Notes: generated from the letters alone by a model not told the origin. Shown: positions 34,947-57,573, counted from the first letter of the stretch. The stretch: 64,000 bases of DNA from Octopus sinensis (GCF_006345805.1 NC_043001.1:133424001-133488000), one strand, 5' to 3'. Made by a program: numbers and translations.

Positions 34947-35097
34947 TTTTCTTTTGTGGACTGATCCTTATTGACAACTGAGTTGGCAGCTGTAAGAAGC
35001 GGATATTTTTCACCACCATTGCATATTCCCTTGAAATCATCCAATCCAGCGTCCAAAACATCAAACCACCGTAATTGTTTTGCAGGGCAAAATTAGC
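34947..35097 (-). CDS. GH18 chitinase-like gene, last visible exon (ANFALQNNYGGLMFWTLD[L]DDFKGIC...YPLL), with an apparent 1-bp deletion
   Basis: Acceptor tttcccacag and donor gtgagt. The GG.M.W.LD.DDF.G.C...YPLL motif is restored by adding one T at 35043-35044. Confidence 0.85.
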
Positions 35098-36508
35098 CTG
35101 TGGGAAAGAATACCATTTGAATTAACATGATTTCAACATTGAGTTTCACATTGACATTATTAACGACATCAACAAGATTTTCCATTCATATCTAAATTGA
35201 TTTCTGCTTTCTCTGCTGAATTCACACAAACAATAGAGTACTAAACAAAATCGTTGTGTAAAATTTAGTTTGTTTTTTTTTTTTTGTCGTTACGTTCTGA
35301 GTTCAAATCCCCGCATGAGTCAGCTTTATTTTTTTTTCCCCCACAGGATTCGTTCTCTAAGTTAACAGGACTCCATACTACTCTACACACTTTTCTCTTG
35401 TTTTGTAGCACTTCTATATCTAAGACTCGCTGACTTGCTCTCCAAAGTGTCCCTGCAACATGTTTCTGTAATATTTATCCAACAATATTGAAGCAAAACT
35501 GCCTGTTAGCCCTCTGCGTATCATTGTACTGATGTACCACTGTATCTCACATCACTGTAGATTACATTATATCTCTATAGCCATGGATATGTATTTGTAA
35601 GCATGCGTATCTGTGTATGTGTAAGTGAGCGTATGTTTGTGCTTAAGCACATATATACACTACTGTATGTGTATGTATCCATTCGAACTTGTGTATTTGT
35701 ATACTTGTCTCCATATATGTCAATAATGCGGTTACACAGCTTGTATACATAATTTTTCTTATTTCGTTTTTTTCCCCACCCCTCCTTTTTCTTTTTTCCT
35801 TCCCCCTTCTTCGTTCCTTTCTCTCTCTCTTCCTTTCTTTCGTTTTTTTCTCTAACTGATACTGATGCAACTTTACGTCCCCCTTACTTAAGCTTTACTC
35901 AGTATATGAGAATCGCTACATCGATGATTTTAACTTGCGTGCGAGATAGATTGCGTGCATATATGTACGCATGCATTTATGTGTATATTTTAGATTTATA
36001 TTTATACGTCTGTATATGTATGGCGTTTGCACGCATCCTTCTGTGTATGTTGATATATATATGTACACTTTAATATAAATATGTATTGCAGTGTAATATT
36101 TATAATAGGTTTTAATTTCTATGCATTAATTATACTTTCTTCATTAACGTCAATATGTATTTTATTCAATGTAAGGTTTTTTCCTCGAATTTTATAATTT
36201 TTATAATTTTTTATATATATATATATATTTTTGAGCTTTTTTTGTTTATCGCTCGAAGATTGACCGTTATTTCTAAAGGGCCAATCAAACAAGTCCATTT
36301 TTTTTAAGGTGTAGCGTTTGTAAGAGTCTAGATTGAATTGATATATCGGTTCCATTCTAGCAAAAACTGTCTGATGAACGGCAACGAGAAAGTCAGAGTA
36401 ACAGATTTTGTTGAATTTTCTGCTGCTTTAAATAAAGCATATTACTCTACCACTGGTATTTGAGTACTCTTTTTTCCACCTTGTTTCACATTTATGTGTT
36501 TACTCCGG

Positions 36509-36566
<58 letters not shown>

Positions 36567-36734
36567 ACACTTAAAAAAGAGGAAATCCTTCACACATTTG
36601 CACACAGTTTTTCTGAAGTTATATCTTCTTATAATTCAGGTATTGTTAATTACAAGCTTAATATTGAAGTATCGCAACAGAAATTCTGGACTAACTCTAA
36701 TTTTAAATCTGCTCTTATAAAACTATGTACAAAC

Positions 36735-36845
36735 CTTCAACTTGACACTCTCGATGTTTTCGTAACCAATCCAATCATTGTCCACAGCAATAAAGGGGAC
36801 TCCTCTGTCTTCCATGAAAACACTTTTTTTTTCAAGTATACATGT
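36735..36845 (-). CDS. GH18 chitinase-like gene exon (TCILEKKSVFMEDRGVPFIAVDNDWIGYENIESVKLK); not in the ORF track
   Basis: Read by hand. Acceptor tacttcacag and donor gtttgt; 111 bp, phase 0/0. VP....W.GY.N..S..K motif. Confidence 0.88.
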
Positions 36846-36921
36846 CTGTGAAGTAAAAATAAAATAACAAGATTTTTTTAAAACACATACTCAATACAAA
36901 TACAACTGTTTCAGATATGGA

Positions 36922-37284
36922 TGGAAGCACTCCGTCGGTTACGACGACGAGGGTTCCGGTTGATCCGAATCAACGGAACAGCCTGCTCGTGAAATTAACG
37001 TGTAAGTGGCTGAGCACTCCACAGACACGTGTACCCTTAACGTAGTTCTCGGGGATATTCAGCGTGACACAGAGAGTGACAAGGCCGGCCCTTTGAAATA
37101 CAGGTACAACAGAAACAGGAAGTAAGAGTGAGAGAAAGTTGTGGTGAAAGAGTACAGCAGAGATCACCACCATCCCCTGCCGGAGCCTCGTGGAGCTTTT
37201 TAAGGTGTTTTCGCTCAATAAACACTCACAACGCCCGGTCTGGGAATCAAAACCGCGAATCCGCTGCCCTAACCACTGGGCCAT
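36922..37284 (-). mobile_element. SINE family A with head deletion, filling most of a 481-bp intron
   Basis: Body match; explains the hybrid 240-aa ORF 36970-37692. Confidence 0.9.
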
Positions 37285-37326
37285 ATACAAGAGTAATATA
37301 CCAATGAAATTAATATAGAACTTTAC

Positions 37327-37521
37327 CTCGTAGTAAGCTAGAAAGCCTTTGTCTTTTGTATATATTCCTCCATTTCCTTTACCGAAAGAAGGAAGACCTT
37401 CTTTTACACCTTTCTCAGGTGTATGCGATCCGGTGAAAAAACTGCGACCATAAAATGGTATACCGATATTAATCTTTTTCTTAGGAACACCAAGACTATT
37501 CCAGTAATGAGCTGTAAAGTT
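37327..37521 (-). CDS. GH18 chitinase-like gene exon (NFTAHYWNSLGVPKKKINIGIPFYGRSF...GFLAYYE)
   Basis: Acceptor tatttgcag and donor gtaaag; 195 bp. YW...G.P..K...G.PFYGRSF and GFLAYYE motifs. Confidence 0.93.
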
Positions 37522-37671
37522 CTGCAAATATAAATTAGTGCATACGAGAGGCAAGATTCGGAATAAAATTCTGGTATTTATGCGAAGAATATGAGAACGA
37601 CCAATGGGGGGGGGGGAGTTCAGAGCTGAAGCGTGCAACAAAGTACCAGAGATGGTACTTTGAAGGCGGTG

Positions 37672-37900
37672 AGCTGGCGGAAACGTTAGCACCCCGGGCG
37701 AAATGCGTAGCCGTATTTCGTCTGCCGCTACGTTCTGAGTTCAAATTCCGCCGAGGTCGACTTTGCCTTTCATCCTTTCGGGGTCGATTAAGTAAGTACC
37801 AGTTACGCACTGGGGTCGATATAATCGACTTAATCCGTTTGTCTGTCCTTGTTTGTCCCCTCTATGTTTAACCCCTTGTGGGTAGTAAAGAAATAGGTAT
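37672..37900 (+). mobile_element. SINE family B
   Basis: Full head and body. Confidence 0.88.
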
Positions 37901-38454
37901 CGGCCAACAAGGAAGCAACGGACTGCGGGCGTCTCGAGCGTGCCAGTGGGTGGTGGCGGTTGTGACAACAGAAATGCGCGAATGAACGAGGCTATTACGA
38001 AGCTGTAGGGACGGACAGGAAGCAGAGACGCATATTATGCAGTAAAACACAGCAAACATTCAAATGAGACCGTTTGTATATAAAAAAAAATACTCATGTC
38101 ACTGAATTTCATTACAATAACGAAATATTGTTCACGTTACTTAGTATGGATCCTATTTATTGTTTCCATAATGGTATGGAAGGACAATGCGGAGATCACT
38201 CAGGAAGAAAACTTCGGAAATAGGAAGAGCTCAGAGAACTGAATCATTAGGTTGGAAATTATACTTTACTTTCATATCCGACAAAATGTTATTTGGCCAA
38301 ACCCAAGAAGTGTCTAGATCCAGATGTGATATCTACACAGTCACATCTACAGTGATATATCTTCCGTGATTTGTTGTAATATCAATATATTAGTATTTAT
38401 ACAGGTATATGTACACATACACAGTAATATCTATGTATATATCCATATACATAG

Positions 38455-38521
<67 letters not shown>

Positions 38522-39269
38522 TATAAAACTTACTTCGAAGAGGATGCGTGGCGTTCAATCATATGATATGAATAATATATATATATGCATATGTGGGTGA
38601 AAGACGTCACAACAGGAGTACATGTACATGGAATATGAACTATTTTTTAGAACAACGAAAGACACAAATGGAAAACAAGACAAATAACAAAAACAACGAC
38701 CCTTCATCAGTTGTTGGCTGTTTTTCTACTCTTGTATTTCGAGCATTTAACAACAATATACTCTTTCGATAAAACTGTTGCTCCCGCAAAGCAAATTAAA
38801 TAAAATTTGGGATTTGCGGAGGGTCAAAATTGATAACACAAACAGGAGAGTGAAAACAAACAGGAAGGGCTGCTAAGCCTAAACGAGGTTGTGGTGGCGA
38901 ACGCGTAAATCAAGCTTGGACAGGAGACAGGCAAGAACACGTCTTCCTTGATCCAGCTACAACGGAGGTAAGAAAGAAACACAAGTTAGGAGAAGAAAGA
39001 TGGCCGATGATCACGTGGGAGCCACATGAGAAGGGAGGGAGAGTGAGGGAGAGAGATTGACTGACAGATAAATGGGAAAGGGAGAGGAAAAATGGAGATA
39101 GGATAAGTGAGAAAAAGTAGGAGGGGAGAAGGGGAGAAAGGAAGAGAGAAGAAAATGAAAGATTTAAAAAATAGTAGAGTGCGCATCAGAATTATTAAGA
39201 TAAAACTTACTTGGAAGAGGATGCGTGGCGTTTAATCATATAATATAATATATATATATATATATATGA

Positions 39270-39783
39270 CTAGCAGTATCGCCCGGCGTTGCTCGGGTTT
39301 GTAAGGGAAATAACTATATAAGCATTTTTAGAGAGTTACTTCCCTTATAGATGCCAATTCGGGCTTTCTTGGCCATTTCTGTTTTGGTGTCTTCAAGCCA
39401 TGAAGTCGTTGTTCTAAAAAAACGCTGGTCTCCTTGACAACGCATTACGACGTTGATTTCCTTAAACTCCCTTCTCCACAGCTTCACGAGGGAGGGAAGA
39501 AGGGGGAGAAGCAAACGCAGGTGCAGGTGTTTTAGCGTGGACGCCAACTCCGCCGCCATCGACACACGAAAAATGGAATAAAATGGAATAAAAAATGATG
39601 TTAAATTATTTTTAAAATCGTAGACTCATCGTAGACGCGCCCTAATAGCCAGACGGGCTCGATATTAATCACGACTATAAGATACCCGAATTTGGTTAAA
39701 CTGCACCGCAAAATGTGGGAGGAGTTAGGAATCTAAATCGAAGGGGACAGACACTCACACAACTACAGTTTTATATATATAGA
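39270..39783 (-). mobile_element. Non-autonomous Helitron variant with a different internal segment
   Basis: Both termini match 6549/11337 (A|TC ... hairpin CTAG|T); about 39345-39575 is unrelated sequence. Confidence 0.8.
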
Positions 39784-39899
39784 TATATGATATATCACAA
39801 ACTGCGTGACATTGATATCGTTGGCAAAATAGAGGAGTAGATGCATGACTTTTTAAAATTTTGCAGCCAATTGTTCTCCCTATGAGGAGCTAATCAATT

Positions 39900-40800
39900 C
39901 TAAGCGGAGCCCCTCGTGAAATTGTACAGGGATCACTACTGTTCGTGATAGCTCTCTCAGACATGCCCTCAGTCATACAGTCAGCCACTCTTACTAGCTC
40001 TCTTCATGATACAAAAGTAAAGGATCTTGTTGATAACTCAAGGCTACAGAAAGATCTAAATGAAATATACTAGTGGACTGAATAAAACATGTAATTTAAT
40101 ACTGAAAAACTTCAAGCACTCCTCTATCGACCCACAAATAGATTGCAATTAGAATGCACAGGACCACGGGTATTGCAATCCCAGAAACAGAATCGGTACG
40201 TGACCTCCTGAGAATCTATATGAGAGGTGGTGCATCATTCCGTGTAAGATGGCAACAATGTGCAAGCAACTGGCGAGTGAGATTCTGAGACCAGAACATG
40301 GAAAAAGGAAACCATATTTATGGAGAACATTCGTTCTCAACCACATGGATTACTGCTCCCAGTTATGGTCACCAAAATCGTTAAACTAACGGTAGAAATC
40401 GAGGCAATCCAAAGCCATTATACCAAAAAAATTGCTTTGATGCAACAGATGGGTTACCGAGGGAGGCTAAAAGAACTGATGGTCGACCCCTTAGAGAGAA
40501 AATACGAAGGTCTTTCACCCGCTTTGGGATTGAAAGCTGCACCAATCACAGGACTGGACGCCACTGCATACTACCAAAAATACTACCCTCTTTGTCCAGA
40601 GTAAGAATCCAATACTGTAACAGCTAAAGGTTCAAAGGCCCACAATTTTTCAATACCTTTCCAAAAGGCCTTTGAGATCTACGAGAAGTAGATGTGGAGG
40701 AGTTTGAAGAATATTTAGACAAAATTTATGAGACTAAATGAACCCACATCGCAACAAGAAATGAAAAGAAGGCCAACTTTGTTCAACTCATTACCTTATC
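39900..40800 (+). mobile_element. Old CR1-like LINE RT remnant
   Basis: QGSLLFV..LSDMP, LQKDLNEIY, IEAIQSHYTKKI, YRGRLKEL in broken frames. Confidence 0.6.
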
Positions 40801-41300
40801 AAGACCGATTCCGAAGACATGACCAAGAATGAGTCTAACGATTTTAAAAAGTCGATCATATGTGGTTATGTGAAAAGTCTACTTCACAATCACATGGTTC
40901 CGGTGCAGCACCTTGGGCAAATGTCTTCTACCAAAGCTTTGTAGTGGATTTGGTAATCAGAGACTGAAAGAGGTCTGGTCTATGTGTGTGTGTGTGTTCA
41001 CCAACAGTGCTCAACAACCGATGTTGGTTTGTTTGTATGCTCGCAGGTTAGCGGTTCGGCGAACGAGTCCAACGGAATAAGTATCAGGCTTTAAAAAAAT
41101 AAGTTCTGGGGTCGATTTGTTCGACTAAAAAGCCTTTCAAGGCGGTGCCTTAAAGTATTTTTTAGTCCAACAAATCTATTATTTGTTTCAGCCTAATAAT
41201 TGGAAAAAGTAAGGAATAAATAAAAAATAATGTTCCTTCCTTTTTGTCTTTTTGAACATAAAATATATTAGAACTTGATGTGTTGACAAGCCATACTTAC

Positions 41301-41427
41301 GACATTTCTTTCGTACTCATCCTCATTTGTGGAGTTACCAGAGTAAAGAGCACTTGGGTGCATCGCATACTCAGAATCTTGAGGTGAATAAAAGTCGTAC
41401 GACATAATTGATATTACATCAACAGCT
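41301..41427 (-). CDS. GH18 chitinase-like gene exon (AVDVISIMSYDFYSPQDSEYAMHPSALY...ERNV)
   Basis: Acceptor ttcatttccag and donor gtaagt; 127 bp. MSYDF and H.SALY correspond to GH18 MTYDFHG and HNSPLY. Confidence 0.92.
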
Positions 41428-42886
41428 CTGGAAATGAAAAGGAAAATAAAAGCCATTGTTTGTTAGCTTAAATACTATTAATTTTTAGTAAAATTCTATT
41501 TGAATTCTAACTTTTTAATTTTCGTTAATTTCTATTCTTTAATTAAATCTATTTGATGGTCAAATTCTGTTTGAATTTTAGTCCCAGTTTATCATTTCCA
41601 CTTCCCCTTTTCAGTTTATCACTTCCCCGTCCCTAAAGTGTCACGCAGTGGGAGTGAGCCCGGATCCATATGGCTGGAAAGCAAACTTCTTACCACACAG
41701 CCGTGCTTATGTGTGTGTGTGTGTGTGTGTGTATGGAGAGAGAGAGAGGGAGACAGAAAGACAGAGAAGGAACAGAAAGACAGAGAGAGAGGAGACAGAA
41801 AGACAGAGGAAGGGATAGAGGTAGTAATGTAGATAAACACAGTTAGGTTTGATGTATGTTTACATAAAACACAAAAAATACAGAATTAAAAATAACGAAA
41901 TTATGTAATGCCTTAACCCGACAACTGTTTCTGGAAGCCTAGAGTTATGTAATGATCATATTTTGCAGATAATATATGTAAAAAGTTATAGGTATGCAAC
42001 AAGTGACCAGTCACATGAATATATTACAGTGAGTCCGGTTTCCCTCATCAAAAAAGACTTTCAAATGTAGATCATACAGTAGTGCCAGCAAATATAACAT
42101 GTTGAAAGCACAAAGGAGGCGGAACGAAATTTCAAGAACTAGGATAAGTGAAAGAAGAACACCTACAACGTGAGATGAAAAAAGAAGGGAGAAGTAAAAA
42201 GAGAGAGAGAGAGAAGAGAGGATAAAATGAAAACTAGCCTGCCGAAAGCATATATCACGAGCAAACAATAAAGCAATTGGGCATGTCAACTGTCCAGACA
42301 AAAAGGCGAAGAGAGATAAGCGTTGAGACAAAGTAGTTGAGGTGTGGTGACAGAGGTGAAAAATATGATGAGAGAAAGAAAATATGCTGTGAGGAGAAAG
42401 TATTATGATGCTTTGCAACTTAAATAACGAGTAAAGATATTTCGTCACAACTAAGAGAAATTTTAACGATTTTACATAATAAGCAAATGTGCAATAATAT
42501 TTATGTTTACAAGAGAAGATTATGCCAAAGAACCTATTGATGAATTAGCTATTTTAATGTCGTGGAATTGTGAGCGATTTCCTGCAACATAATTTATGAA
42601 CACCATGGTTAGTGTTGTAGGGAGTACCCTCACAGTCAGGATAAGGTATAGGGAATGCTCTGGGACTTGAAGTGCCCTGGATTAAGAATTTGGAGTTTGA
42701 ATTCAAATTCATTTGAACGCTACTTTGTGTTTTCTATATTGAGCTTATCTTGCCCTCACCTACTTACTCTGTGTGTGTGGTGAGTGAAGATTAATTCTGG
42801 ATTTATGTATATAACCTGAACATATTTTACACCTTTCCATTCCCTGTTAATATGTAAACAAGCAATTGATATAGAGTTTCACATAC

Positions 42887-43002
42887 TTATTTATAGCATC
42901 AATATCGTAGGCTTCATCTATCAATGATTTCTTAGACCCTACAACAATTCCAAGAAGGAGTTCCTTTTCTTTTGATTCCTTCTTAAACGCATCTTTCATT
43001 TC
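42887..43002 (-). CDS. GH18 chitinase-like gene exon (EMKDAFKKESKEKELLLGIVVGSKKSLIDEAYDIDAIN); not in the ORF track
   Basis: Read by hand. Acceptor ctaatttcag and donor gtatgt; 116 bp, phase 0 in and phase 2 out. Matches the GH18 segment EL..AF...LLLTAAV.AG...ID.GY.I..I. Confidence 0.88.
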
Positions 43003-43790
43003 CTGAAATTAGAAACGTTTTTAATTAATGAGACAATTAATGTGTACACACACACACACAGTCACTCACTCACACACACAATCACTCACTCACACATACA
43101 GACAGACTAAGCTACATGCAAAGAATTCCTTTCAGGCTCAGTAATTTAGTAACCAACATATTACGACCACTGATTCACATAGTTTCCTCTCGATGCCACT
43201 TGCACAACTGCTACAACGGTTTCTGCACTTCTGAACTATCTTCGGAACTACTCTTGTCACCCAACTTCACCTATCCCTCATCCTTTTTATCGTGTCTTTG
43301 AGTCAAACCCCACAATAAACACAGCAACCGTCTGAAATTCACCCCACCCCACCATCTACTTTTTCCTCCAACTACAAATGTTTGGCCACTGATGGAGCCA
43401 TTAAAAACTATTGAATATCATTGAAAAAAATTACATCGCCTCTAACTCTTTGTCTGTCCGGTGCATCACATGTGACACGCAGAGCATATTTTCCTCGCTT
43501 CCATGCACCATATATGATACACATCCTCAATTTTTTCAGCCTCTAGAGTAACTTAGGACTTATGAAAAGAAGCCTTTATATTAGCCATAGTATGAAAAAA
43601 GACTAACTTGTTTTTAAGAACAAGCATGAACGTTTAGGAAAATATTATGTAACTACTTTGGGTAAGCAAAGGGTTAAATATGAAAATATCAATAGGTTTC
43701 AAAAAAATAGATTGTAGTACAATACTTAAAAGGTGGCGAGGAGTTTGGCTGCGAATGACAATTGACGGTTACTTTACTTTTTTTTTTTAC

Positions 43791-44180
43791 CTTTTTACTC
43801 GTTTCAGTCATTTGACTGCGGCCATGCTGGAGCACCGCCTTTTAGTCGAGCAAATCGACCCCGGGACTTATTCTTTGTAAGCCCATTACTTATTCTATCG
43901 GGTCTCTTTTGCCGAACCGCTAGGTGACGGAGACGTAAACACACCAGCATCGGTTGTCAAGCAATGCTAGAGGGACAAACACAAGCACAAACACACACAT
44001 ACATATATACATATATACGACAGGCTTCTTTCAGTTTCCGTCTACCAAATCCACTCACAAGGCTTTGGTTGGCCCGAGGCTATAGCAGAAGACACTTGCC
44101 CAAGATGCCGCGCAGTGGGACTGAACCCGGAACCGTGTGGTTGGTTAGCAAGCTACTTACCACACAGCCACTTCTACGCC
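43791..44180 (-). mobile_element. SINE family C
   Basis: Full-length. Confidence 0.9.
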
Positions 44181-44735
44181 TATAAAATTCAAATGCGCAA
44201 TCAATGTCTGAAACCAGGCTAAGTAACTGACGTTAGGAATATAAAGAAAGTTTTATTAATTATAAAATACAAATATCAGAAAACGAAAATGTATCTTGTT
44301 TTATGGCAATTACAGCAAAATATATTTAAACAATAGTTTTGGACGATATATCCGTATTTTGAAATGGATTAGTTAGAGGAGGAAAGCGACGTCTAAGACC
44401 TTTTTTAGGGTCTCGAAGCCTCATGGAAGGAAGGGAAGAAATTATCCTCACACTGAAGATTTAGCCTGAATGCTATCGGTCTATTTTGCCGAACCGCTAA
44501 GTGACGAGGACGTAAACACCTTTTAAGTATTGTACTCCTCTGGCTGACGGAGACACCTCTAAATGTACCCAAGTAAAAGGAGGAACTCTTAAACATTCGT
44601 GACAGTGAATCTACTAGCAGATCTGCGATCAATGCACTCAACGGTCAAATGTAGAGATTAAAACTAGACAATAGATTGATTCTATCACTTGTTTATATTT
44701 AAAAAGAAAATTATTATTTAAAAAAATTATGCATC

Positions 44736-45150
44736 GCAGGAGTGGCTGTGTGATAAGTAGCTTGCCTACCAACCACATGGTTCCGGGTTCAGTCCCACTG
44801 CGTGGCACCTTGGACAAGTGTCTTCTGCTATAGCCTCGAGCCGACCAATGCCTTGTGAGTGGATTTGGGAGACGGAAACTGAAAGAAGCCTGTCGTATAT
44901 ATGTATATATATGTACATATGTGTGTGCACGTTTGTGTGTCTGTGTTTGTCCCCCTAGCATTGCTTGACAACCGATGCTGGTGTGTTTACGTCCCCGTCA
45001 CTTAGCGGTTCGGCAAAAGAGACCGATAGAATAAGTACTGGGCTTACAAAGAATAAGTCCCTGGGTCGATTTGTTCGACTAAAGGCGGTGCTCCAGCATG
45101 GCCGCAGTCAAATGACTGAAACAAGTAAAAGAGTAAAAGAGTAAAGAGAG
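44736..45150 (+). mobile_element. SINE family C
   Basis: Full-length with (aaaagagt)n-type tail. Confidence 0.9.
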
Positions 45151-45553
45151 TATAAAAATTATTTTATTATAGATATTCTTTCAAACTCCAAATAAACTCC
45201 AGGTTCTTGCTTTCTTCTCTCTCTAAAATGACAGACAATGTTGAAAACTGCACTCCTCTTATATATATCTCCTGATTAGATAAGCTACCGACAAACCAGT
45301 TGTGGCTGCAACTATACGTACGATGGTGACCTGTTGATCATCCTACTGCATATGCCTATGGCGAAACAAGACTACGGGGATTATGGAAATATGACCCCCA
45401 TTCCTATCAAGTATTCGGAATATGCAGCTGATGGAGTTATTGCAAAATTTGATTAAATGAGTTGAGAGGTTTCTTCACTATCATCCTTAGGTCAAAACGT
45501 GCGGTTGATTTATCTTGGCTTAGTGGCAGACATTAAAGATAGTTTTTTTTTAG

Positions 45554-45936
45554 GGAAGCACTCCGTCGGTTACGACGACGAGGGTTCCGGTTGATCCGAA
45601 TCAACGGAACAGCCTGCTCGTGAAATTAACGTGTAAGTGGCTGAGCACTCCACAGACACGTGCACCCTTAACGTAGTTCTCGGGGATATTCAGCGTGACA
45701 CAGAGAGTGACAAGGCCGGCCCTTTGAAATACAGGTACAACAGAAACAGGAAGTAAGAGTGAGAGAAAGTTGTGGTGAAAGAGTACAGCAGAGATCACCA
45801 CCATCCCCTGCCGGAGCCTCGTGGAGCTTTAGGTGTTTTCGCTCAATAAACACTCACAACGCCCGGTCTGGGAATCGAAACCGCGATCCTATGACCGCGA
45901 GTCCGCTGCCCTAACCACTGGGCCATTGCGCCTCCA
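45554..45936 (-). mobile_element. SINE family A
   Basis: TSD attaaagatagt. Confidence 0.92.
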
Positions 45937-46076: not shown

Positions 46077-46329
46077 CTTAAGTAAGTTGCCAAATTTTTC
46101 TTTGTCACCCGATTGACTTCCTCTTTTTGTTGGAAATATCCAGCAGATATCTAAACCATCAAAGTTATGTATGCGAAGGAATGTTATTACGTTTTCGATG
46201 AATTTTTTTCTATTGTCTTTGCTAGAAATTACATGGGTAAATGGAAGAGATCCCATATTCCAACCACCGACAGCCAACATTGTTTTCAGATTCTTATTAT
46301 TTATTTTAAGTTCGTTAACTCTGGCGTAC
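46077..46329 (-). CDS. GH18 chitinase-like gene, exon with GGW and the degenerate catalytic motif (YARVNELK...MLAVGGW...FDGLDICWIFP...GNLLK)
   Basis: Acceptor tttcgaacag and donor gtgagt; 253 bp, in frame with both neighbours. LAVGGW and FDGLD motifs. Confidence 0.95.
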
Positions 46330-47247: not shown

Positions 47248-47278
<31 letters not shown>

Positions 47279-47282
47279 AAGA

Positions 47283-50200
47283 AGGAACACCGGGGGACTT
47301 TTAAGATGTAAGAAGGAAAATTCAGAGCTCCGAAACCTATCCACAAACATCGAAAACAAGGACATCCTATGGAGCCAAAGTTTTACTAACAAAGAATTGG
47401 ACTGTACCCGAGTAAGTAATACAAATTGAAATTTATTACTATTTTCGAAATGAAATGATGTATTTTGACTCGATATCATCTCCATCTCTAACGCAACACA
47501 TGCGTGAAACATCACGATCATCCCTGACCCCAAACACCATGTACAAAGGAACTACGAAGAAATTAAATGCCACCGATACTATTCAACCCAAGAATAACAA
47601 TCGAGCGGTACGTACATTAAATTTACAACAAAAAATGTACGAAAAACTACACGTGCGAAATAATGTGACAACAGAAATAAACGGACCGGTACTCTACGAA
47701 AATGACGACCGTCAAAATAATGGGCCGGACGTTGTACCTCATGTCCCGCAAATAAAACCCAAAAGACGTAAATGGACACGTGAGGAATACATTTCTATCT
47801 TACACGCATACTTCACAGCAGTACTCTACCCAAAAAATGTAAATACAACAACACATACATATAAAATATGGAAGGAAAATAATAGAGATATAGACTTGGA
47901 TACAGCAATGAACCCTAATAAATTAGCTAACGTACGAAGATACATTCTCAACACAAAAAAAATATCAGAAATAGAAATAGAACACCTAAAAGAAAACATA
48001 CACCAGGAAAATGTAGATAGAAGCCACACAACAATGCCCAATAATATAAACACTGAAACTGTAAAACACGAAGACAAACGCAACATTCCCAACAAACACG
48101 ATGTAAACAACGAAGGGGAGCCTAATGATTATGATAATATAAAAAATAAAATAATCAAAGAACTGAAAACCACAGAGCTCAAAATGGACCACCGACCATA
48201 CCTCCCAAGAATCAAAATAAACGAAATAACAACACCTATTATAAACAGCATAAACCTAGCCGTCACTGAACTGATAGCCACTGAATCAAAAAAAAGTGAT
48301 ATCACTGAGCTAAATAACCTAATATACGCAGCAGCCACTGCAGCCACAAAAGAAGCTGGATACTCACCCAAACCCGCCCAAACAGGAGTACCACCACCCA
48401 AACAAACCCTGTGGATAAATAACATCCAAAGCAAAATAAAAAAAATTAGAAAAGACCTGTCGATTCTTAATGAAATCAGCAAAGAATCAACGCTACTGAG
48501 CAACAAAAAGAGAACAAAAATACTCCGCAAATATAACATGACAGAGAAAGATTTGCCTGAAATAAAAGAAAAGCTGAAGCAAGATATCCTTGCCAAAGCA
48601 CAAAGGATCCGCCGGTACAAGAAACGCCAACGCTTCTTTGAAGAAAACAAAAAGTTCAGCTCCAACCCCAAAAAGTTCTACCAAGAACTGGGCAAAAATA
48701 AAATAGAAGTCACTGCAGCACCAACGGCAGAAGAATTGGAAGAATTCTGGAGAGAGATATGGTCGGCGAACGAACCACCAAAAAAAAGGAGTATCAAAAT
48801 TACAAACTCGGCATCTGAACAACTTTGGACCCCCATAACAACTGAAGAGGTCACCCAGGCACTGCAAAGACTAAGCAACTGGAAGGCACCTGGGCATGAC
48901 AAGATCCCCAACTTCTGGTTGAAATATCTAACAGGAATGCACAAAAAGCTGGCTGAAAACTTTAACAACATACTAGCAGAGCCAGAGACAATGCCTGAAT
49001 GGCTCACGAAGGGGAAAACCATCTTAATTCCCAAATCAAATGAAACAGAAAAACCAGAAAACTACAGACCAATAACCTACCTCCCTACTATGTTCAAGGC
49101 ATTTACTGCAGTGATATCACAAAGGCTGAACAAGCACCTGGACGAAAACAAACTGTTCCCAGAAGAACAGAAAGGATGCCGCAAAGGCTCATATGGCTGT
49201 AAAGATCAACTAATGATTAATAAAGCCATAACTGAAGACAGCCACAGAAAGAAGAAAGGCCTCAGTATGGCCTGGATTGACTACAAAAAGGCGTTTGATA
49301 GCATCCCCCACACATGGATCCTCGAAACACTAGCCATTAACAAAGTAGCACCAACAATCATAAAATTCATAGAGCACTCTATGAATAAATGGCAAACAGT
49401 CCTACACCTCCAAACAAAAGAGGGACTCATGAAAACCAAAGACATCCCCATTAGAAGAGGAATATTCCAGGGAGACACGCTCTCTCCACTCCTTTTCTGC
49501 TTGGCACTGTCACCTCTATCTGATATGCTAAATAGAACTGGATGCGGATATAAATGTTACGGCAAAACGATCAGCCACCTTTTATATATGGATGACCTAA
49601 AACTATACGCTGCAAATGACAAACAGCTGGAACACTATTAAAGACAGTTCATGGATTTACCAAAGAAATAGATATGAAATTTGGATTAGAAAAATGCGCC
49701 AAAGTAACCATGAAAAGAGGAAAACTAGTTAAGAGTAACAACATCACACTAGATAAAACCAATGAAATAAAAGAATTAGACCAAAGCCAAACTTACAAAT
49801 ACTTAGGAATCCATGAACTAGATAATACACAACACACACAAATGAAAGAGAAAATAAAAAAAGAATATTATAGACGAGTTAGATCAATACTAAACACAGA
49901 GCTCAATGCTAAAAACAAGATAATAGGTATCAACACTTTAGCTGTCCCAGTTATAAGTTACAGCTACAATATCCTTAACTGGACACGAAATGAACTGACC
50001 AAAATAGATAGGAAAACAAGAAAAATAATGACAGGATCTAGGATGCATCACCCAAAATCTGACATAGAAAGACTATATATACAACGTATAGAAGGTGGTA
50101 GAGGCCTTATACAGCTGGAAAACTACTATAAAATAACCACCATAGGACTGCAAAAATATCTACTTCAGAAGGAAGGAAAACTGATCCAGATAGCGGCAAA

Positions 50201-51245
50201 ACACGAGCAAAACAAAAAACTGTTCTCAGTATTTAAGGAAGCTGACAAATACAAACAAGAAATCATACCACCTAATAAACATGAAGAAGAAGAAGAAGAA
50301 GATGAAGAAACAACAAAAGCTATAAAACAAATGAAATCCAAACTAAAAACAGAACAGCAACGAACCATGATAAAACGATGGCAAGAAAAGCCCCTTCATG
50401 GTAAATACTGCACTAAACTAAACGCAAAAGAAATAGACAAGAAAAATCCCAGCAATGGTTGAGAAGCTCAGGACTCAAAGCAGAAACAGAGGGATTTTTA
50501 ATTGCAGCACAAGACCAAAGCCTCCCCACCAGAAATTACCAAAAACATGTAATGAAAAGAAATATTACAAGTAACTGCAGAATATGTGGAGATGGACAAG
50601 AAACAATAAATCATATTATCTCTAGCTGCCCAGTCCTGGCTAAGAAGGAATATATTCACAGACATGACAGAGTTGGAACTTACATACATTGGAAGCTATG
50701 CCAACATTATGGAATAACAACAGAAAAAAGATGGTATAGGCACACACCAGAAAAGGTCACAGAAAACGAGAAAGCAACCATACTCTGGGATATGCCGATA
50801 CACACAGATAGAGAAATTAAGGCCAACAGACCAGATATAGTTGTCAGAGATCATGAAGGAAAAAAAAAATGCTTTCTAATTGATGTATCAATACCGGCAG
50901 ATGACAACGTGTCTCTAAAAGAAATGGAGAAACTCTCAAAATACAAAGACCTGGAAATAGAGGTAACTAGAATGTGGAATCTGAAAACAGAAACAATTCC
51001 TATCATAGTAGGTGCATTAGGCATGATAAAAAAATATTCAGACAAATACATAACAAAAACACCAGGACTTACAAACACATATAACATACAGAAAATTGCA
51101 CTACTAGGCACTGCCCACATCCTACGCAGAACACTTTCCATACAATAACCATCAGAGCATCACAACAAATCACAGCACATACCCAAGGCACACAGAGCTG
51201 CGCTCGGTAGTGAAGTGAAAGCACGCTATAAAAATAAAACTACTG
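47283..51245 (+). mobile_element. Near full-length R4/Dong-clade non-LTR retrotransposon inserted in (TAA)n
   Basis: Single long ORF with RT, CCHC knuckle and C-terminal restriction-like endonuclease; about 100-bp 3' UTR; (aat)n/(aag)n upstream and (taa)n downstream. The exact 5' boundary is uncertain. Confidence 0.9.
47455..51148 (+). CDS. RLE-type retrotransposon polyprotein in three frames (47455-49641, 49674-50462, 50459-51148) joined by two 1-bp shifts
   Basis: KWTREEY N-terminal motif; KAPGHDKIPNFWLK; NYRPIT; IDYKKAFDSIPH; GIFQGDTLSPLLF; YMDDLKLY; GGRGL; CRICGDGQETINHIISSC; RPDIVV..IDVSIP..KLSKYKDL. Confidence 0.9.
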
Positions 51246-51252
51246 AATAATA

Positions 51253-51303
<51 letters not shown>

Positions 51304-51323
51304 TGATGATGATGATGATGATG

Positions 51324-51794
51324 ATAAAAACATGCCCCCTCATTGATATGACTGTCCCAATCGATATAAACGTATCTGTCAAGACCTACCAAAAACTGAG
51401 CAAATATAAAGCTCTTGAAATAGAAATCAGCAAAATGTGACACCTGAAGACTAAAACAACACCTGTTGTCATAGGTGCCCTGGGAATGATAGCAAAAGGG
51501 GCTGATAGCTACCTAACTCAGATACCAGGAAAACCACAAATGGCAGAAATTCAAAAGATAGTGATCATGGCAACTGCTCATATCATGCGCAAATATTTTC
51601 TATGTATCTCAAGTTTTAAAACAAACATAATTTTCGTATGGTATTTTAGACATTCACTAGTACAACACTAAGTACAAAACCAAATATATGGCACCTTAGG
51701 CATAACACCAACATGAACTTCCAACTTGTTGTCTCTTGAGGTCTCTGGGTGAGACTTGGAGCCAACTTATACAAATGTAAAGCAAAAGTCAAAC

Positions 51795-51797
<3 letters not shown>
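51324..51797 (+). mobile_element. Second R4/Dong-like family, 3' remnant (RLE end plus 3' UTR)
   Basis: LIDMTVP..KLSKYKALEIEISKM..PVVIGALGMI..IQKIVIMATAHIMRK; followed by (taa)n. Confidence 0.82.
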
Positions 51798-51852
<55 letters not shown>

Positions 51853-51853
<1 letters not shown>

Positions 51854-51899
51854 CTAAAGGGTCGAAACAAACCCGAGCAACGCCGGGCGATACTACTAG
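51853..51899 (+). mobile_element. 47-bp Helitron 3'-end element
   Basis: a|tctaaagggtcgaaacaaacccgagcaacgccgggcgatactactag|t; matches the 3' end of the 33938-34303 element. Confidence 0.7.
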
Positions 51900-51911
51900 T
51901 AATAATAATAA

Positions 51912-53166
51912 TAATCCTTTCTATTATAGGCACAAGGATGAAATTTGGGGGAAGCGAGCAGTTGATTATATCGATCCCAGTACTTAACTGGTCCTTATTT
52001 TATCGACCCCGAAAGAATGAAATGCAAAGTCAACCCCAGTGGAGTTTGAACGCAGAACGTAGCGACAGACTAAATACGCGGTTTCAAATCTTGCCACAAG
52101 TGTAGAAATTTTGGGGGAAGGGATAAGTCGATTACATGGACCCCCAGTGTTCAACTGGTACTTATTTTATCGACCCGAAAGGATGAAAGACAAAGTCGAC
52201 CTCGGCGGAATTTGAACTCAGAACGTAGCGACAGGCGAAATATCGCTAAGCATTTTGTCCAGCGTGCTAATGATTCCGTCAGCTCACTACCTTTTACTAA
52301 TAATAATTCTTTTAACTATAGGCACAAGGCCTGAAATTTTGTGGAGGGGGCGGGGGTTAAGTTGATTACACCTACCCCAGTACTCAACTGGTTCCTAATT
52401 TATCGGCCCCGAAAGAGTGAAAGGTAAAGCCGACCTCGGCGGACTCTAAACTCAGAACGTAGCAACAGACGAAATACTGCTAAGCTTCTTGCTCGGCGCG
52501 CTAACGATTCTGCCAGCTCACTGTCTTGATAATAATAATAATCCTTTCTACTGTAGGCACAAAGCCTGGATTTTGTGGGGAGAGGAACAGTCGATCACAT
52601 TAACTCAAGTACTTCACTGGTATTTAATTTATCGACCCTGGAAGAATGAAAGGCAAAGTCGACCTCAGCGGAATTTGAACTAAGAACGTAGCGACGGGTT
52701 AAATACCTATTTCTATTTCTTTATTACCCACAAGGGGCTGAACATAGAGGGGACAAACATGGACAGACATAGGTATTAAGTCGATTATATCGACCCCAGT
52801 GCTTAACTGGTACTTAATTTATCGACCCCGAAAGGATGAAAGGCAAAGTCGACCTCAGCAGAATTTGAACTAAGAACGTAGCGACGGGTTAAATACCGCT
52901 AAGCGTTTCGCCCGGCGTGCTAACGATTCTGCCAGCTCGCCACCTTAATAATAATCCTTTCTACTAAGTGCACAAGGCATAAATTTTGGTGGGAAGAGAC
53001 TAGTCGATTACATCGACCCCAGTGTTTCAGTGGTGGTTGATTTATCGACCCCGCAAGGATGAAAGGCAAAATCGACCTCAGTGGAATTTGAACCAGAATG
53101 TACAGACGGACGAAATGCCGCATAGCATTTTGTCCGGCGTGCTAACGATTCTTTCAGCTCATTACC

Positions 53167-53206
<40 letters not shown>

Positions 53207-53262
53207 TGATAATAGTGATAATAATAATAATAATAATAATAATAATCATAATAATAATAATC

Positions 53263-53308
<46 letters not shown>

Positions 53309-53361
53309 TAATAATAATAATGATAATAATAATAAATAATAATAATATAATAATAATAATA

Positions 53362-53398
<37 letters not shown>

Positions 53399-53401
53399 CA
53401 T

Positions 53402-53440
<39 letters not shown>

Positions 53441-53476
53441 ATAATAATAATAATCATAGTAATAATAATAATAATG

Positions 53477-53512
<36 letters not shown>

Positions 53513-53529
53513 TAATAATAATAATAATG

Positions 53530-53582
<53 letters not shown>

Positions 53583-53583
53583 C

Positions 53584-53635
<52 letters not shown>

Positions 53636-53663
53636 TATAATAATAATATAATAATAATAATAA

Positions 53664-53705
<42 letters not shown>

Positions 53706-53766
53706 TAATAATAATATAATAATCATAATAATAATAATCATAGTAATAATAATAATAATAATAATG

Positions 53767-53834
<68 letters not shown>

Positions 53835-53839
53835 TAATG

Positions 53840-53871
<32 letters not shown>

Positions 53872-54110
53872 CATAGTAATAATAATACTAATAATAATAA
53901 TTCAGATTTTGCAACGAGGACAGCAGTTTTGGGAGAGGGGGATGAGTCGATTACATTGACCAAAGCGTTCAACTGGTACCTATTTCATCGACTCCGAAAG
54001 GATGAAAGGCAAAGTCGCCTCGGCGGAATTTGAACTCAGACTGTAAGGACGGACGAAATGCCGCTAAGCATTTCGCTTGGCGTGCTAAAGATTCTGCTAT
54101 CTCGCCACCT
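51912..54110 (-). mobile_element. Head-to-tail array of about 7 SINE family B copies separated by (TAA)n, including a roughly 720-bp degenerate (TAA)n at 53170-53890
   Basis: Repeated gatgaaaggcaaagtcgacctc...gccagctcgccacctt blocks, all on the minus strand. Confidence 0.88.
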
Positions 54111-54115
54111 TAATA

Positions 54116-54193
<78 letters not shown>

Positions 54194-54221
54194 TTAATAA
54201 TAATAATGATAATTTTTTTTT

Positions 54222-54370
54222 AGACAGCCACTAGTACAACACAAAAAACAACCAAATATATGGCACACGAGGCATAACAACAACGTGAACTTCCAACCTG
54301 TTGTCTCTTGAGGTCTCCGGGTGAGACTTGGAGCCAACTTGTACAAATATAAAGCAAAAGTCAAACATAT
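54222..54370 (+). mobile_element. 3' UTR-only copy of the second R4/Dong-like family
   Basis: Matches about 51650-51797 (aacttccaac.tgttgtctcttgaggtctc.gggtgagacttggagccaac); (taa)n on both sides. Confidence 0.8.
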
Positions 54371-54401
54371 AATAACAATAATAATGATAATAATAATAAT
54401 A

Positions 54402-54448
<47 letters not shown>

Positions 54449-54492
54449 TAATAATAATAATAATATAATAATAATAATAATAATAATAATAT

Positions 54493-56240
54493 TAAGCCTC
54501 ACAAATGGAGCCCACACACGCTCACCGTCCAGAAATCGTTGCAGGTGGCGTAACCCAAGAGCGTGTCTGCACACTAGGAGCCACGGCATACCTAATCCGC
54601 CGCTCAGAGGATCCTGACAACAGACTGAGCACCTGACCATTGGAACGCGTCCTCCCATAAGAATTTAAATAAGAGACGTTCCAACCTGGTCGAGCAGTAA
54701 CCGGAACAAAACAACGGTCAGGCGATAAATGATAACGGAAGCGATACAGGCCTTATCCACCTCTGCCTGATCTTCCAGGGACAGCTTCCTCTCAGCCCGT
54801 GGCCGCCCTGTTCGCCACCCCATCCCAGTTCTTATCAACCTGGAGGTCCGAACCAAACTGGTCCGTCGGCCCACCGTCCGACAACGCCGTCCGATGGCAT
54901 CGACTAGCCTCTCTAGGAGCCCAACCGCAAACCCACCGATTTGTCGGCATTAATTTTAGCCCCTGCAATCGGCTCATTTAGGATGGTGCCTCCCGTCTCC
55001 ACTTCGGAAGCATCTGATATTATGACGGTGATGTCGTCTGTGTATGCCGTCACTGTCCTTCCGTGTCCCAGTTCGAAAGGGATGCCCCTTAAATGTTACA
55101 CCTTTCGCAGCAGTGGCCCGTGTGCCAATATGTACAGAAGATGCAACAGCAGACAGCCCTGACGAATCGAACGTGCCATACCAGACGGATCCGATAGGTG
55201 ACGGTTTTCTTTGACCAGTGAATAGGTGCCGCTGTGCATTGCAGCGATCAAGCCATTGAAAACGGGTCCGAAACCGCCAGCTTCCAGGACAGCTTTCAGG
55301 ACGGCTTCTAACTAGCGATACTTGACCCTAATGAATGCTTTCGAGTGATCCAAATTGATCAAAGCACTCCCAAAGCCAGCTTTGGTTCCAGCCCTCTTTA
55401 TGATGTATCGCATAATGTGGAGGTTGTCGTGAATAGACCTGCTCGGGATTGCGCACGTTTGCACCTCTGCGACCAGGCTACCGACAAGTGCCAACTTTTT
55501 CGCTAACACCTTGGCCAAAATCTTAAACTTTGTTTAGCAGAGTTATGGACCGAAAATTCCCTAGTACGTCTCCATTGTCGTCGCCCTTCCTCAGCAGTGT
55601 CCATACCTCAGTTAACAGCGCTAGGAATTCTACAGTCCTGTTGCCAGTTGCGATAGACGTCTGCCAAGTGGTCACCAAACAGATCTGGCATGAATACGTA
55701 GAATTCATACGGCAGACCATCAAAACCGGACGATTTATGATTTGTGCAATCGCTCATTGCCTCCCGAATCTTAACGGCTGCTATCGACTTTTCACATAAC
55801 TTCGCGTAAGCTGCTGAGAGCCGCGGCAAGCCGTCCAGGTACAAACTAAAGTCCACTACCGTCGTCGAGTCATCGCCCTCCCAAAACAGCCACACGAAGT
55901 GCTGCTGAAAAACTGCACACATCTGCTCGGAGCCGAGTAACACGCGCCCGCCACGCGCCCGCCACGCACCCGATCCGTCAAAGACCTGATCATGGTTTTG
56001 TATCCATGTCGCGTCTCCATCGTTCGGGCCCGTCGGACAGCTTTAGTTCGTTCATGTTTGAGTGCACGGTCCTTAGCTGACAACATAACCTTCGTGTTTC
56101 ACTTCGAAGAAATGGTAAAGGGCCATTCTCGCGCTAACACATTAGTCGCAATGCCCTTCTAATCGCCTCTTCCAATTTGCTAACTAGTTCCCCCTCTAAT
56201 CTATTCCTTTCAATTGCTATAGTTTATGGAGATAACTAGG
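54493..56240 (-). mobile_element. Degenerate L1/Tx1-clade LINE ORF2 fragment (second, diverged family)
   Basis: SSGFDGLPYEFY, NFRSITLLN, QTCAIPSRSIHDNL, LINLDHSKAF, GLSMPW-like segment. Confidence 0.82.
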
Positions 56241-56384
56241 CTATGAAAAACTTGACTCAATGGTTTACATTTTCTAGTTTTAAACATTCGTTCGGAAAAC
56301 AAATATCTTGTAATTGATTTTGTTTTCTCTCTCTTAGAACCAATAACTTAATTAATAACAGTGGTGTACACCACAGTTCTATAG
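56151..56384. repeat. 234-bp direct repeat, copy 1 (copy 2 at 59361-59594)
   Basis: Three substitutions seen by eye between the copies. Confidence 0.92.
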
Positions 56385-56806
56385 TGTGTTACAGGAAGTA
56401 TTCTGCCCCAACACCATCATGCCAACTCTGTTCAACTTATTGAACCTCATGTCGTTACATGCCTCTGTATTTATCCAGTTCTTTGCTAGATCGATTCAAT
56501 TTGCAAACAAACGACTATTTACCGAAGCAAATCATTATGAGTTTCTTTGAAGTCTACTGTTTCACGATTTCAAAAAAATAAAAAGCCCAACACAATCTTC
56601 TTTCTAGAATGACGATTCTTTATCCAAGAATGCTAACCAGTTGCACCCAGACATCACATATTGTCAGAACATGGGTTAGATGAATGACAAGACTTAGGTC
56701 TATGAAGGTCTCTCCTGGCTTCTGAAGATTCACGTGGTAACTTCAACTGAACACTGAAACCGATCGTAACATTCATTAAATATAGTTTCCTCCCTGCTTA
56801 TAACAC

Positions 56807-57190
56807 TGGAAGCACTCCGTCGGTTACGACGATGAGGGTTCCGGTTGATCCGAATCAACGGAACAGCCTGCTCGTGAAATTAACGTGTAAGTGACTGAGC
56901 ACTCCACGGACACGTGTACCCTTAACGTAGTTCTCGGGGATATTCAGCGTGACACAGAGAGTGACAAGGCCGGCCCTTTGAAATACAGGTACAACAGAAA
57001 CAGGAAGTAAGAGTGAGAGAAAGTTGTGGTGAAAGAGTACAGCAGGGATCACCACCATCCCCTGCCGGAGCCTCGTGGAGCTTTAGGTGTTTTCGCTCAA
57101 TAAACACTCGCAACGCCCGGTCTGGGAATCGAAACCGCGATCCTATGACCGCGAGTCCGCTGCCCTAACCACTGGGCCATTGCGCCTCCA
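56807..57190 (-). mobile_element. SINE family A
   Basis: TSD ttataacact. Confidence 0.92.
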
Positions 57191-57380
57191 CTTTATAACA
57201 CTAGTTTATGATTCACTCGGTTCTTTGCTGAGGAGTTTGGTCCAAAGAAAGCTAAGGTTCTTATTCTTGGACCATATTACTATTCTGAAAATTTTAATAA
57301 AAACTGAGTTTTTGTTGGATTTAATTGGTTGCGTTTCTTATCTATTATCGCAATAAAAATACATATTATTAGTAACTCAC

Positions 57381-57573
57381 ATTCCTTTTGACCACTTGCT
57401 GTTTTCATCATTCCATTCCTGCGCAACTAAGCTGTTATTGACGATGTTAGCAAATGCATAAGAAATATGTGTGCACAATGTTGCATCGATATCGTCAGGC
57501 ACGAATTTCCCTTCATTGCTGCGGTACTGAGCCCAGTTTGTGTAAAAGCACCAACGTCGCAACTCTGATGTGT
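57381..57573 (-). CDS. GH18 chitinase-like gene, first visible coding exon ([17 protein letters not shown]...CTHISYAFA...WNDE)
   Basis: Classic GH18 N-terminal motifs [10 protein letters not shown] and CTHISYAFA. Acceptor ttttacag and donor gtgagt; 193 bp, phase 1 in and phase 2 out, joins the next exon as ATG (GM-YARV). Confidence 0.93.

Follow-up and report, generated by a model that had tools for sequence, protein, structure and literature searches.

A GH18 chitinase-like gene of Octopus sinensis with cysteine and isoleucine in its catalytic motif

Does a GH18 gene whose catalytic residues have been replaced still encode a functional protein in octopus, or is it a gene on its way to loss? 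This question is raised by a locus on the Octopus sinensis chromosome CM016863.1 (GCA_006345805.1), of which a stretch of 64,000 nucleotides, referred to as the window, was analysed. Over 54,619 bp its reverse complement matches this chromosome without a difference, which puts the window at about 133,424,001-133,488,000. The gene in question lies on the minus strand and is annotated in RefSeq as 'chitinase-3-like protein 1' (XP_029637089.1/XP_036358984.1, 447 amino acids); the translated exons of the window correspond to XP_029637089.1. The top database match was an Octopus vulgaris protein with 98% identity, whose 90% cluster includes the two RefSeq accessions. We consider the gene to be probably the O. 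sinensis member of an orthologous group confined to octopods, whose products are secreted GH18 proteins of a single domain, unable to hydrolyse chitin by the mechanism of their family. It would thus encode a functional pseudo-enzyme, and the one-base gap in its reading frame is most likely an assembly error.

The catalytic motif and the cephalopod clade

The original prediction had pointed to the codons GAT GGT TTA GAT ATC TGC TGG ATA, and these are indeed present on the minus strand at 46160-46137, where they encode DGLDICWI in place of DGLDxDWE. The motif exon reads ...FLRIHNFDGLDICWIFPTKRGS... In the numbering of human chitotriosidase (hCHIT1) the Cys codon TGC (46145-46143) occupies the position of D138 and the Ile codon ATA (46139-46137) that of E140. 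The motif DxxDxDxE of active chitinases, with its proton-donor Glu and assisting Asp, is absent, and the degenerate motif is kept in the orthologues: O. vulgaris and O. bimaculoides carry DICWI with identical codons, and the motif of Argonauta hians is AAT GGT TTA GAT GTC TGC TGG TTG (NGLDVCWL). A read error, which had been thought improbable before, is thereby excluded as the origin of the motif. Since the losses of Glu and Asp are common to Octopus and Argonauta, they are old.

A survey of the motif in 120 homologues revealed Cys or Ser at the position of the assisting Asp only in nine cephalopod sequences, from octopods as well as decapods. Eight of the nine have Cys at the D138 position and one has Ser. 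The members from Heterololigo and Sepia show DICWE, an unnamed transcript shows DISWE, and DICWQ is found in a paralogue of O. sinensis and O. bimaculoides and in another unnamed transcript; the present gene with DICWI and the Argonauta gene with DVCWL complete the group. Outside this cephalopod clade an acidic D..E motif (DxDWE, DxDFE or a close variant) is present in about 100 of 110 matches. The two unnamed transcripts (DICWQ, DISWE) are Logan contigs and carry a CBM14 domain; the DICWQ transcript (P0004) is found on 52 contigs and should thus be abundantly expressed somewhere.

In a neighbour-joining tree, which was rooted on vertebrate chitinases and included no CHI3L1 sequence, the nine Cys/Ser-motif sequences formed one clade with 100% bootstrap support. 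Support was 94% for the Ile/Leu group within it and only 56% for a group made up of the Gln and Glu members. This cephalopod-only clade is nested among GH18 sequences from molluscs and other invertebrates. Thus, the loss of Asp and Glu falls inside a cephalopod-specific clade, apart from the chitinase-like proteins of vertebrates, insects and bivalves, which agrees with the independent derivation proposed earlier. The replacement of Asp by Cys, which had been described as a trait of the present gene, is found across the whole coleoid clade, the Glu-keeping members included. Because Cys occurs in octopods and decapods alike, the Asp-to-Cys change has to be older than the octopod-decapod split and goes back to the ancestor of all coleoid members; loss of the Glu followed, probably on more than one occasion among octopod lineages. 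Single steps via CTG and CTA/TTA connect CAG (Gln), TTG (Leu) and ATA (Ile), which would be compatible with a path from Glu through Gln and Leu to Ile but does not prove it.

A survey of molluscan glycoside hydrolase families that included O. bimaculoides reported the critical D and E as conserved in all chitinase groups (PMC7560691), and the cephalopod Cys clade seems not to be described in that survey. We found nothing specific to the present gene in the literature on cephalopod chitinase-like proteins.

Gene model and the one-base gap

Exons on the minus strand were found by a stop-to-stop scan for open reading frames (ORFs) and by inspection of their borders. Seven exons lie within 57573-34947, every one with AG/GT borders. 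The first GH18 exon (57381-57573, RefSeq coding exon 3) ends with SKWSKG and holds the equivalents of C26, Y27 (here Phe), W31 and C51, as judged from its borders, its translation and a tblastn alignment to the O. vulgaris protein. The exon at 46077-46329 carries GGW together with the degenerate catalytic motif, and its protein sequence is 100% identical to that of O. vulgaris. The borders and the RefSeq exon map define the next exon at 42887-43002 (EMKDAFKK...DAIN), after which the exon at 41301-41427 (AVDVISIMSYDFYSPQD...) provides the equivalents of M210, Y212 and D213 and lacks that of W218. The alpha+beta insertion domain is encoded at 37327-37521 (NFTAHYW...FLAYYE; translation and RefSeq exon map), and the exon at 36735-36845 (TCILEKK...SVKLK; borders and RefSeq exon map) contains the C307 equivalent. 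The seventh exon (34947-35097; ANFALQNNYGGLMFWTLD followed by LDDFKGICNGGEKYPLL...) has a one-base gap relative to the two sister species, as revealed by a three-species alignment.

The RefSeq model comprises ten coding exons, of which two lie past the right end of the window and the terminal one at 19485-19385, likewise on the minus strand. The original description of a seven-exon gene was exact with respect to the seven exons and their outer limits 57573 and 34947, but the gene has three further coding exons. Those past the window end carry the start and encode MAPIMIGTQGKMAFLHLLIVLLVPLLTNSSE, judged by inspection to be a signal peptide, and the N-terminal hydrophobic stretch encoded there suggests that the protein is secreted. 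A tblastn search of the window with five members of the clade as queries detected no second GH18 gene. The DICWQ paralogue is located 11 Mb away on the same chromosome.

We also considered a truncation of the O. bimaculoides orthologue by mutation and rejected it. A run of N in the assembly (CM046605.1, locus 9755-9845) lies inside the first GH18 exon, and as a result the protein XP_014779959.1 ('chitotriosidase-1') begins at the next exon. An older 368-amino-acid version of the O. bimaculoides protein spans more than XP_014779959.1.

Within exon 35097-34947 one C is absent between 35044 and 35043 (GGAT^TGG vs. GGATCTGG in the three-species DNA alignment): O. vulgaris and O. bimaculoides both read GGATCTGGATGAT, and the window reads GGAT-TGGATGAT. 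The exon is split over two frames, ANFALQNNYGGLMFWTLD with MFWTLD in the first and LDDFKGICNGGEKYPLLTAANSVV... in the next, LDDFKGICNGGEKYPLL likewise being out of the MFWTLD frame. The seven exons total 1146 nt, where 1147 are required. Retention of all splice phases, as previously claimed, does not hold in this exon, in which the AG/GT borders are in place but the frame is broken. The protein XP_029637089.1 has the sequence ...MFWTLDWMISREY... around the gap and is then read through in the shifted frame as ...GGLMFWTLDWMISREYAMVVKNIRFLQLPTQLSIRISPQKKTPKIPVNEMS...HNE. By this shift the conserved LDDF...C...YPLL downstream of the gap, with a disulfide Cys and helix alpha8, falls out of frame, and the loop with the Cys of the second disulfide is lost together with the last barrel helix. 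In this region the O. vulgaris protein is modelled by AlphaFold as a strand (374-378) followed by a helix (396-415). The C-terminal 66 residues of XP_029637089.1/XP_036358984.1 (WMISREY...HNE) are out of frame, and the intact frame ends with ...STKENTKDSS as in O. vulgaris, the protein of which has the C-terminus ...KENTKDSS. In the terminal exon (19385-19485) the intact frame contributes only (N)TKDSS before the stop codon TAA at 19469-19467, as against TPKIPVNEMS...HNE in the shifted RefSeq frame. A protein-database search with the last 100 residues gave two unrelated 41% matches only and did not recover the known orthologue either, so it was uninformative.

The remainder of the exon is identical to O. 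vulgaris, and the frame past the gap is fully open. Along 53.5 kb of alignment the locus shows 8.4 mismatches and 2.3 gap openings per kb between O. sinensis and O. vulgaris. One-base gaps outside homopolymers are distributed unevenly, with 16 bases missing in O. sinensis vs. 3 in O. vulgaris (42 vs. 23 when all one-base gaps are counted). For a coding sequence of 1.24 kb about 0.3 errors are expected, compared to about 0.07 real gaps even if the sequence were neutral. Residual deletion errors in one of two sister-species assemblies would produce such an asymmetry, and the gap is therefore quite probably an assembly error. If so, the out-of-frame C-terminus of the RefSeq protein is most likely an artefact. 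The counts also suggest that the O. sinensis assembly may hold residual deletion errors that are able to break other gene models.

Fold, cleft residues and known relatives

GH18 was the only domain found by a Pfam scan of the protein (PF00704, 273-279 bits, 7.6e-83, profile positions 1-317). The scan detected no CBM14 in the present protein, whereas the paralogue has one. The best relative of known structure is human chitotriosidase (5e-90). For the O. vulgaris orthologue AlphaFold gave a model with a mean predicted local distance difference test score (pLDDT) of 90.8 and a predicted TM-score (pTM) of 0.88. In Foldseek comparisons this model matched chitotriosidase, acidic mammalian chitinase (AMCase), YKL-40-type structures and YKL-39 with TM-scores of 0.92-0.95 (normalised to target length); for chitotriosidase the score was 0.93-0.95 and the root-mean-square deviation 1.5 A. 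Homology and modelled fold thus assign the protein to the (beta/alpha)8 barrels of family GH18, and with a non-acidic residue in place of the catalytic Glu it is, as far as sequence and model can tell, a chitinase-like protein.

Residues were mapped onto hCHIT1 numbering, with the cleft residues of known chitotriosidase structures as reference. The equivalents of C26, C51, W31, F58, W71, G97, G98, W99, N100, D136, M210, Y212, D213, Y267, R269, C307, W358 and the Cys of ...KGICNGG... are kept. The changes are Y27F, D138C, E140I, Y141F, Y190L, W218Q, E297D and M300F. There are five Cys, four at the two conserved disulfide positions and an extra one at the D138 site; with two disulfides, the motif Cys is left without a partner. 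The earlier statement that the substrate-binding aromatics are retained applies to one side of the cleft: W31 (TNW), W99 (GGW) and W358 (MFW) on the -3 to -1 side are present, but W218, the +2 platform, is replaced by Gln, and Y27 and Y141 are both replaced by Phe.

Loss of the catalytic Glu abolishes hydrolysis by GH18 enzymes, and removal of this Glu leaves binding without cleavage. In line with this, the PDB contains E-to-L mutants of insect chitinase complexed with uncleaved (GlcNAc)5, a pentamer of N-acetylglucosamine (GlcNAc). For the octopus protein a similar mode of action may be proposed. With Ile for the proton-donor Glu and Cys for the Asp that positions the N-acetyl group, cleavage by the family mechanism would not take place. 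The barrel, the two disulfides and the residues of the -3/-1 subsites (equivalents of W31, W99, Y212, D213 and W358) are retained, and the remnant cleft would most likely hold a GlcNAc-containing oligosaccharide or glycan uncleaved. The surface of the protein changes fast, which points to contacts with partners that change too, such as those met in defence, reproduction or secretions.

The mammalian proteins CHI3L1 (YKL-40), CHI3L2 (YKL-39), Ym1/Chil3 and oviductin resemble the present protein in being secreted single-domain GH18 barrels without CBM14, with both disulfides and with a non-acidic residue in place of the proton-donor Glu. Ym1 has the motif FDGLNLDWQYP and oviductin FDGLDLTFLYP; the motif of YKL-39 is DGLDVSWI and would be the nearest look-alike of DGLDICWI. 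Foldseek TM-scores to YKL-40/SPX-40/YKL-39 structures were 0.93-0.95 (normalised to target length). In contrast to these mammalian proteins the present one belongs to a cephalopod-only clade and is not their orthologue, has Cys at D138 and lacks the equivalent of W218, which YKL-40 presumably keeps. Vertebrate CHI3L1 structures match no better than CHIT1/AMCase, and given the cephalopod-only clade the protein owes its RefSeq name 'chitinase-3-like protein 1' to similarity alone. Human CHIT1 and AMCase are the best match in sequence and structure and share W31, W99, M210, Y212, D213, R269 and W358. They differ from the octopus protein at D138 and E140, which are replaced, and at W218, E297, Y27 and Y141, and also by their C-terminal chitin-binding domain.

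The cephalopod paralogues in the Cys clade comprise the O. sinensis 'chitinase-3-like protein 1 isoform X1' (DICWQ and CBM14) and the proteins of Sepia esculenta (BAS05959.1) and Heterololigo bleekeri (BBU59751.1), both deposited as 'chitinase' (DICWE and CBM14). They are 49-52% identical to the present protein, share its exon structure and the Cys at D138, and have likewise lost W218 and E297. Phe at the Y27 position is found in most members of the Cys clade; the O. sinensis DICWQ paralogue keeps Tyr. Unlike the present protein, the paralogues retain CBM14, and their catalytic residue is Glu or Gln. In other GH18 lineages catalytic residues were lost independently in the insect IDGFs and in oyster Cg-Clp1/Clp2, which are secreted proteins with growth-factor or immune roles. 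Neither an insect IDGF nor an oyster Clp was recovered in the cephalopod clade.

Selection, alternatives and significance

Coding sequences of O. vulgaris, O. bimaculoides, Argonauta and the paralogue were reconstructed from genomic loci. The ratio of non-synonymous to synonymous substitutions (dN/dS) was calculated by the Nei-Gojobori method; the code for dN/dS and for the neighbour-joining tree was self-written. For the whole gene dN/dS was 0.90 (95% confidence interval (CI) 0.57-1.48) between O. sinensis and O. bimaculoides, 1.07 (0.67-1.86) between O. vulgaris and O. bimaculoides, 0.66 (0.24-2.42) between O. sinensis and O. vulgaris, and 0.27 (0.18-0.39 across three pairs) between Octopus and Argonauta. 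The DICWQ paralogue showed 0.33 (0.17-0.64) between O. sinensis and O. bimaculoides, i.e. a threefold slower non-synonymous evolution than the 0.90 of the present gene.

These values are not distributed uniformly over the protein. Between O. sinensis and O. bimaculoides amino acids changed in 3 of 91 conserved columns (at least 80% conserved in other GH18 proteins) vs. 59 of 257 others (Fisher test, 4.6e-6). The ratio dN/dS was 0.13 (CI 0-0.41) in the conserved columns and 1.17 (0.70-2.16) in the variable ones. The reading frame contains no stop codons, an outcome reached in 3.8% of simulations after 90 neutral substitutions. All three coding indels between O. vulgaris/O. sinensis and O. bimaculoides are in-frame, compared to 25% in the non-coding flanks, which have 7.5 gaps per kb. 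According to these comparisons the core of the protein is probably under purifying selection. Outside the core it appears to be either free or adaptively changing, two states that such tests cannot separate. A ratio near 1 had been named beforehand as a sign of a pseudogene. Gene-wide this value was indeed observed within Octopus, but the pattern after splitting sites by GH18 conservation is not that of a pseudogene, and the ratio as such was not accepted as a sign of decay. Taken together the data point to a GH18 protein that evolves fast and still functions, though not as an enzyme.

The coding sequences of O. sinensis and O. vulgaris show differences at 13 codons, and over 412 codons 9 amino acids are changed. 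Among these 13 there are four (codons 53, 83, 290 and 329 of XP_029637089.1) that are changed at two or three bases, e.g. CAG vs. TTC at codon 83, at a non-coding mismatch of 0.84%. Multinucleotide mutation, selection or conversion could account for them. An apparent excess of exon over intron differences between the two species was not upheld, as it vanishes once multi-nucleotide codons are counted as single events.

Several findings weigh against a functional sugar-binding protein. The gene-wide dN/dS within Octopus (0.90-1.07) is three times that of the paralogue, and dN (0.10) about equals the intron divergence at the same locus (0.07-0.095), so that much of the protein must be unconstrained. 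The frameshift could be real. The equivalents of W218 and E297 are lost throughout the clade, which makes ligand binding uncertain, and the Argonauta orthologue (BAAFZT010000027.1) has lost those of N100, M210 and D213 and the first motif Asp. Furthermore, no Logan transcript contigs are contained in the 90% cluster of the protein, its accessions occur in no searchable paper, and they are absent from the proteome supplements for O. vulgaris skin mucus and posterior salivary gland, in which other GH18 proteins are listed. Roles in beak, radula, sucker cuticle or immunity, as initially suggested, are unsupported. A study of the digestive gland of Paroctopus (PMC12607849) reported transcripts that take the names 'Chitotriosidase-1' and 'Chitinase-3-like protein 1' from their best octopus match, but these could not be tied to the present gene.

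It is unlikely, if the strongest of the alternatives, that O. sinensis carries a recent unitary pseudogene or null allele. The deletion would then be real, the disulfide-Cys loop and the last barrel helix would be lost, and the gene would be dying after a long period of relaxed constraint. The frameshift in the reference assembly, which RefSeq reads through, the gene-wide dN/dS and the lack of transcript or peptide evidence in the sources just named would all fit this explanation, as would the 9 changes relative to O. vulgaris, for which the CI of dN/dS reaches up to 2.4. Against it stand the intact ORF in O. vulgaris, only 0.84% distant in non-coding sequence, in O. bimaculoides and in Argonauta, and the low ratio in conserved columns. 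The open frame past the gap, identical to O. vulgaris, and the five-fold excess of such one-base deletions in the assembly also speak for an error. The frameshift is the only disabling lesion and is confined to the O. sinensis assembly, and since the introns are kept the gene is not a processed pseudogene.

Rather improbable is a functional protein that has given up carbohydrate binding and uses the GH18 barrel as a scaffold for protein-protein contacts, e.g. as an inhibitor or a structural component of a secretion. The lost W218, E297 and Y27 equivalents, the missing CBM14, the dN/dS of about 1.2 in variable columns and the Argonauta losses would be in accordance with it. On present alignments the -1 subsite is more degraded in Argonauta than in Octopus, and these residue losses weaken sugar binding as a conserved function of the Ile/Leu group. 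On the other side, the equivalents of W31, W99, W358, Y212 and D213 are strictly kept in the three Octopus species. Chitin binding appears uncertain in view of the missing CBM14, the lost +2 Trp and the Argonauta losses of N100 and D213, and the conserved -3 to -1 side is only an indirect sign of ligand binding in Octopus.

A bolder proposal, to which we give somewhat less credit again, concerns the whole clade. It would represent a distinct, ancient coleoid GH18 subfamily in which the substrate-assisting Asp was exchanged for a conserved unpaired active-site Cys that has taken on its own task. In Glu-keeping members this Cys might assist catalysis through its thiol or gate it by redox state, or it might serve for covalent tethering. 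Squid and cuttlefish would have DxxDxCxE, the Glu would have been lost in octopods, and the Ile/Leu proteins would form a branch that evolves fast and serves recognition.

That the present protein still acts as a glycosidase or transglycosylase, weakly or in an unconventional way via the Cys or another acid, is very improbable: the Cys is conserved in eight of nine clade members from octopods and decapods, decapod members deposited as 'chitinase' keep the Glu, and active chitinases were purified from squid and cuttlefish liver and octopus salivary gland with no link to the DICWE sequences shown (PMC4728518), but the proton-donor position is Ile here and Leu in Argonauta, the motif offers no nearby acidic substitute, loss of this Glu abolishes hydrolysis, and E-to-L mutants serve as inactive traps. 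The pseudo-enzyme remains the preferred explanation.

Other elements of the window are mobile or repetitive. A non-LTR (long terminal repeat) retrotransposon at 47455-51148 on the plus strand lies in an 11-kb intron, on the strand opposite to the gene, and comprises an ORF of 728 amino acids with RVT_1 (6e-25) followed by two more ORFs, one with zf-RVT. Pieces of a PIF1-like (Helitron-type) helicase at about 30841-33039 on the minus strand (PIF1 2.7e-8, Pif1 2B domain 2e-18) are broken by stops and frame changes. An interspersed repeat of roughly 400 bp occurs at 43785-44190, 44735-45150, 58262-58677 and 61811-62220 and each copy is 82-95% identical to numerous sites of the O. vulgaris locus. 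Another family of short repeats recurs at about 30419-30643, 37040-37225, 45604-45853, 56858-57082 and 61072-61311. Long microsatellites, (TG)n, (AT)n, (TA)n and a 730-bp (TAA)n, are located at 2210-2650, 5516-5809, 13674-14019 and 53168-53901. An Rfam scan of the window gave no match.

GH18 proteins have repeatedly lost catalytic residues and become lectin-like or signalling proteins, with cases in mammals, insects and bivalves. The gene is already listed in RefSeq under a chitinase-like name and the route from enzyme to binding protein is a familiar one. In RefSeq the O. sinensis protein is out of frame at its C-terminus, and its name wrongly implies orthology to vertebrate CHI3L1. The O. 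bimaculoides model is cut short by a gap in the assembly; O. vulgaris CAI9723552.1 is the version best suited to experiments. The present gene would add an independent cephalopod case of catalytic loss in the family, and the active-site Cys shared by the whole clade is the most interesting by-product of the analysis.

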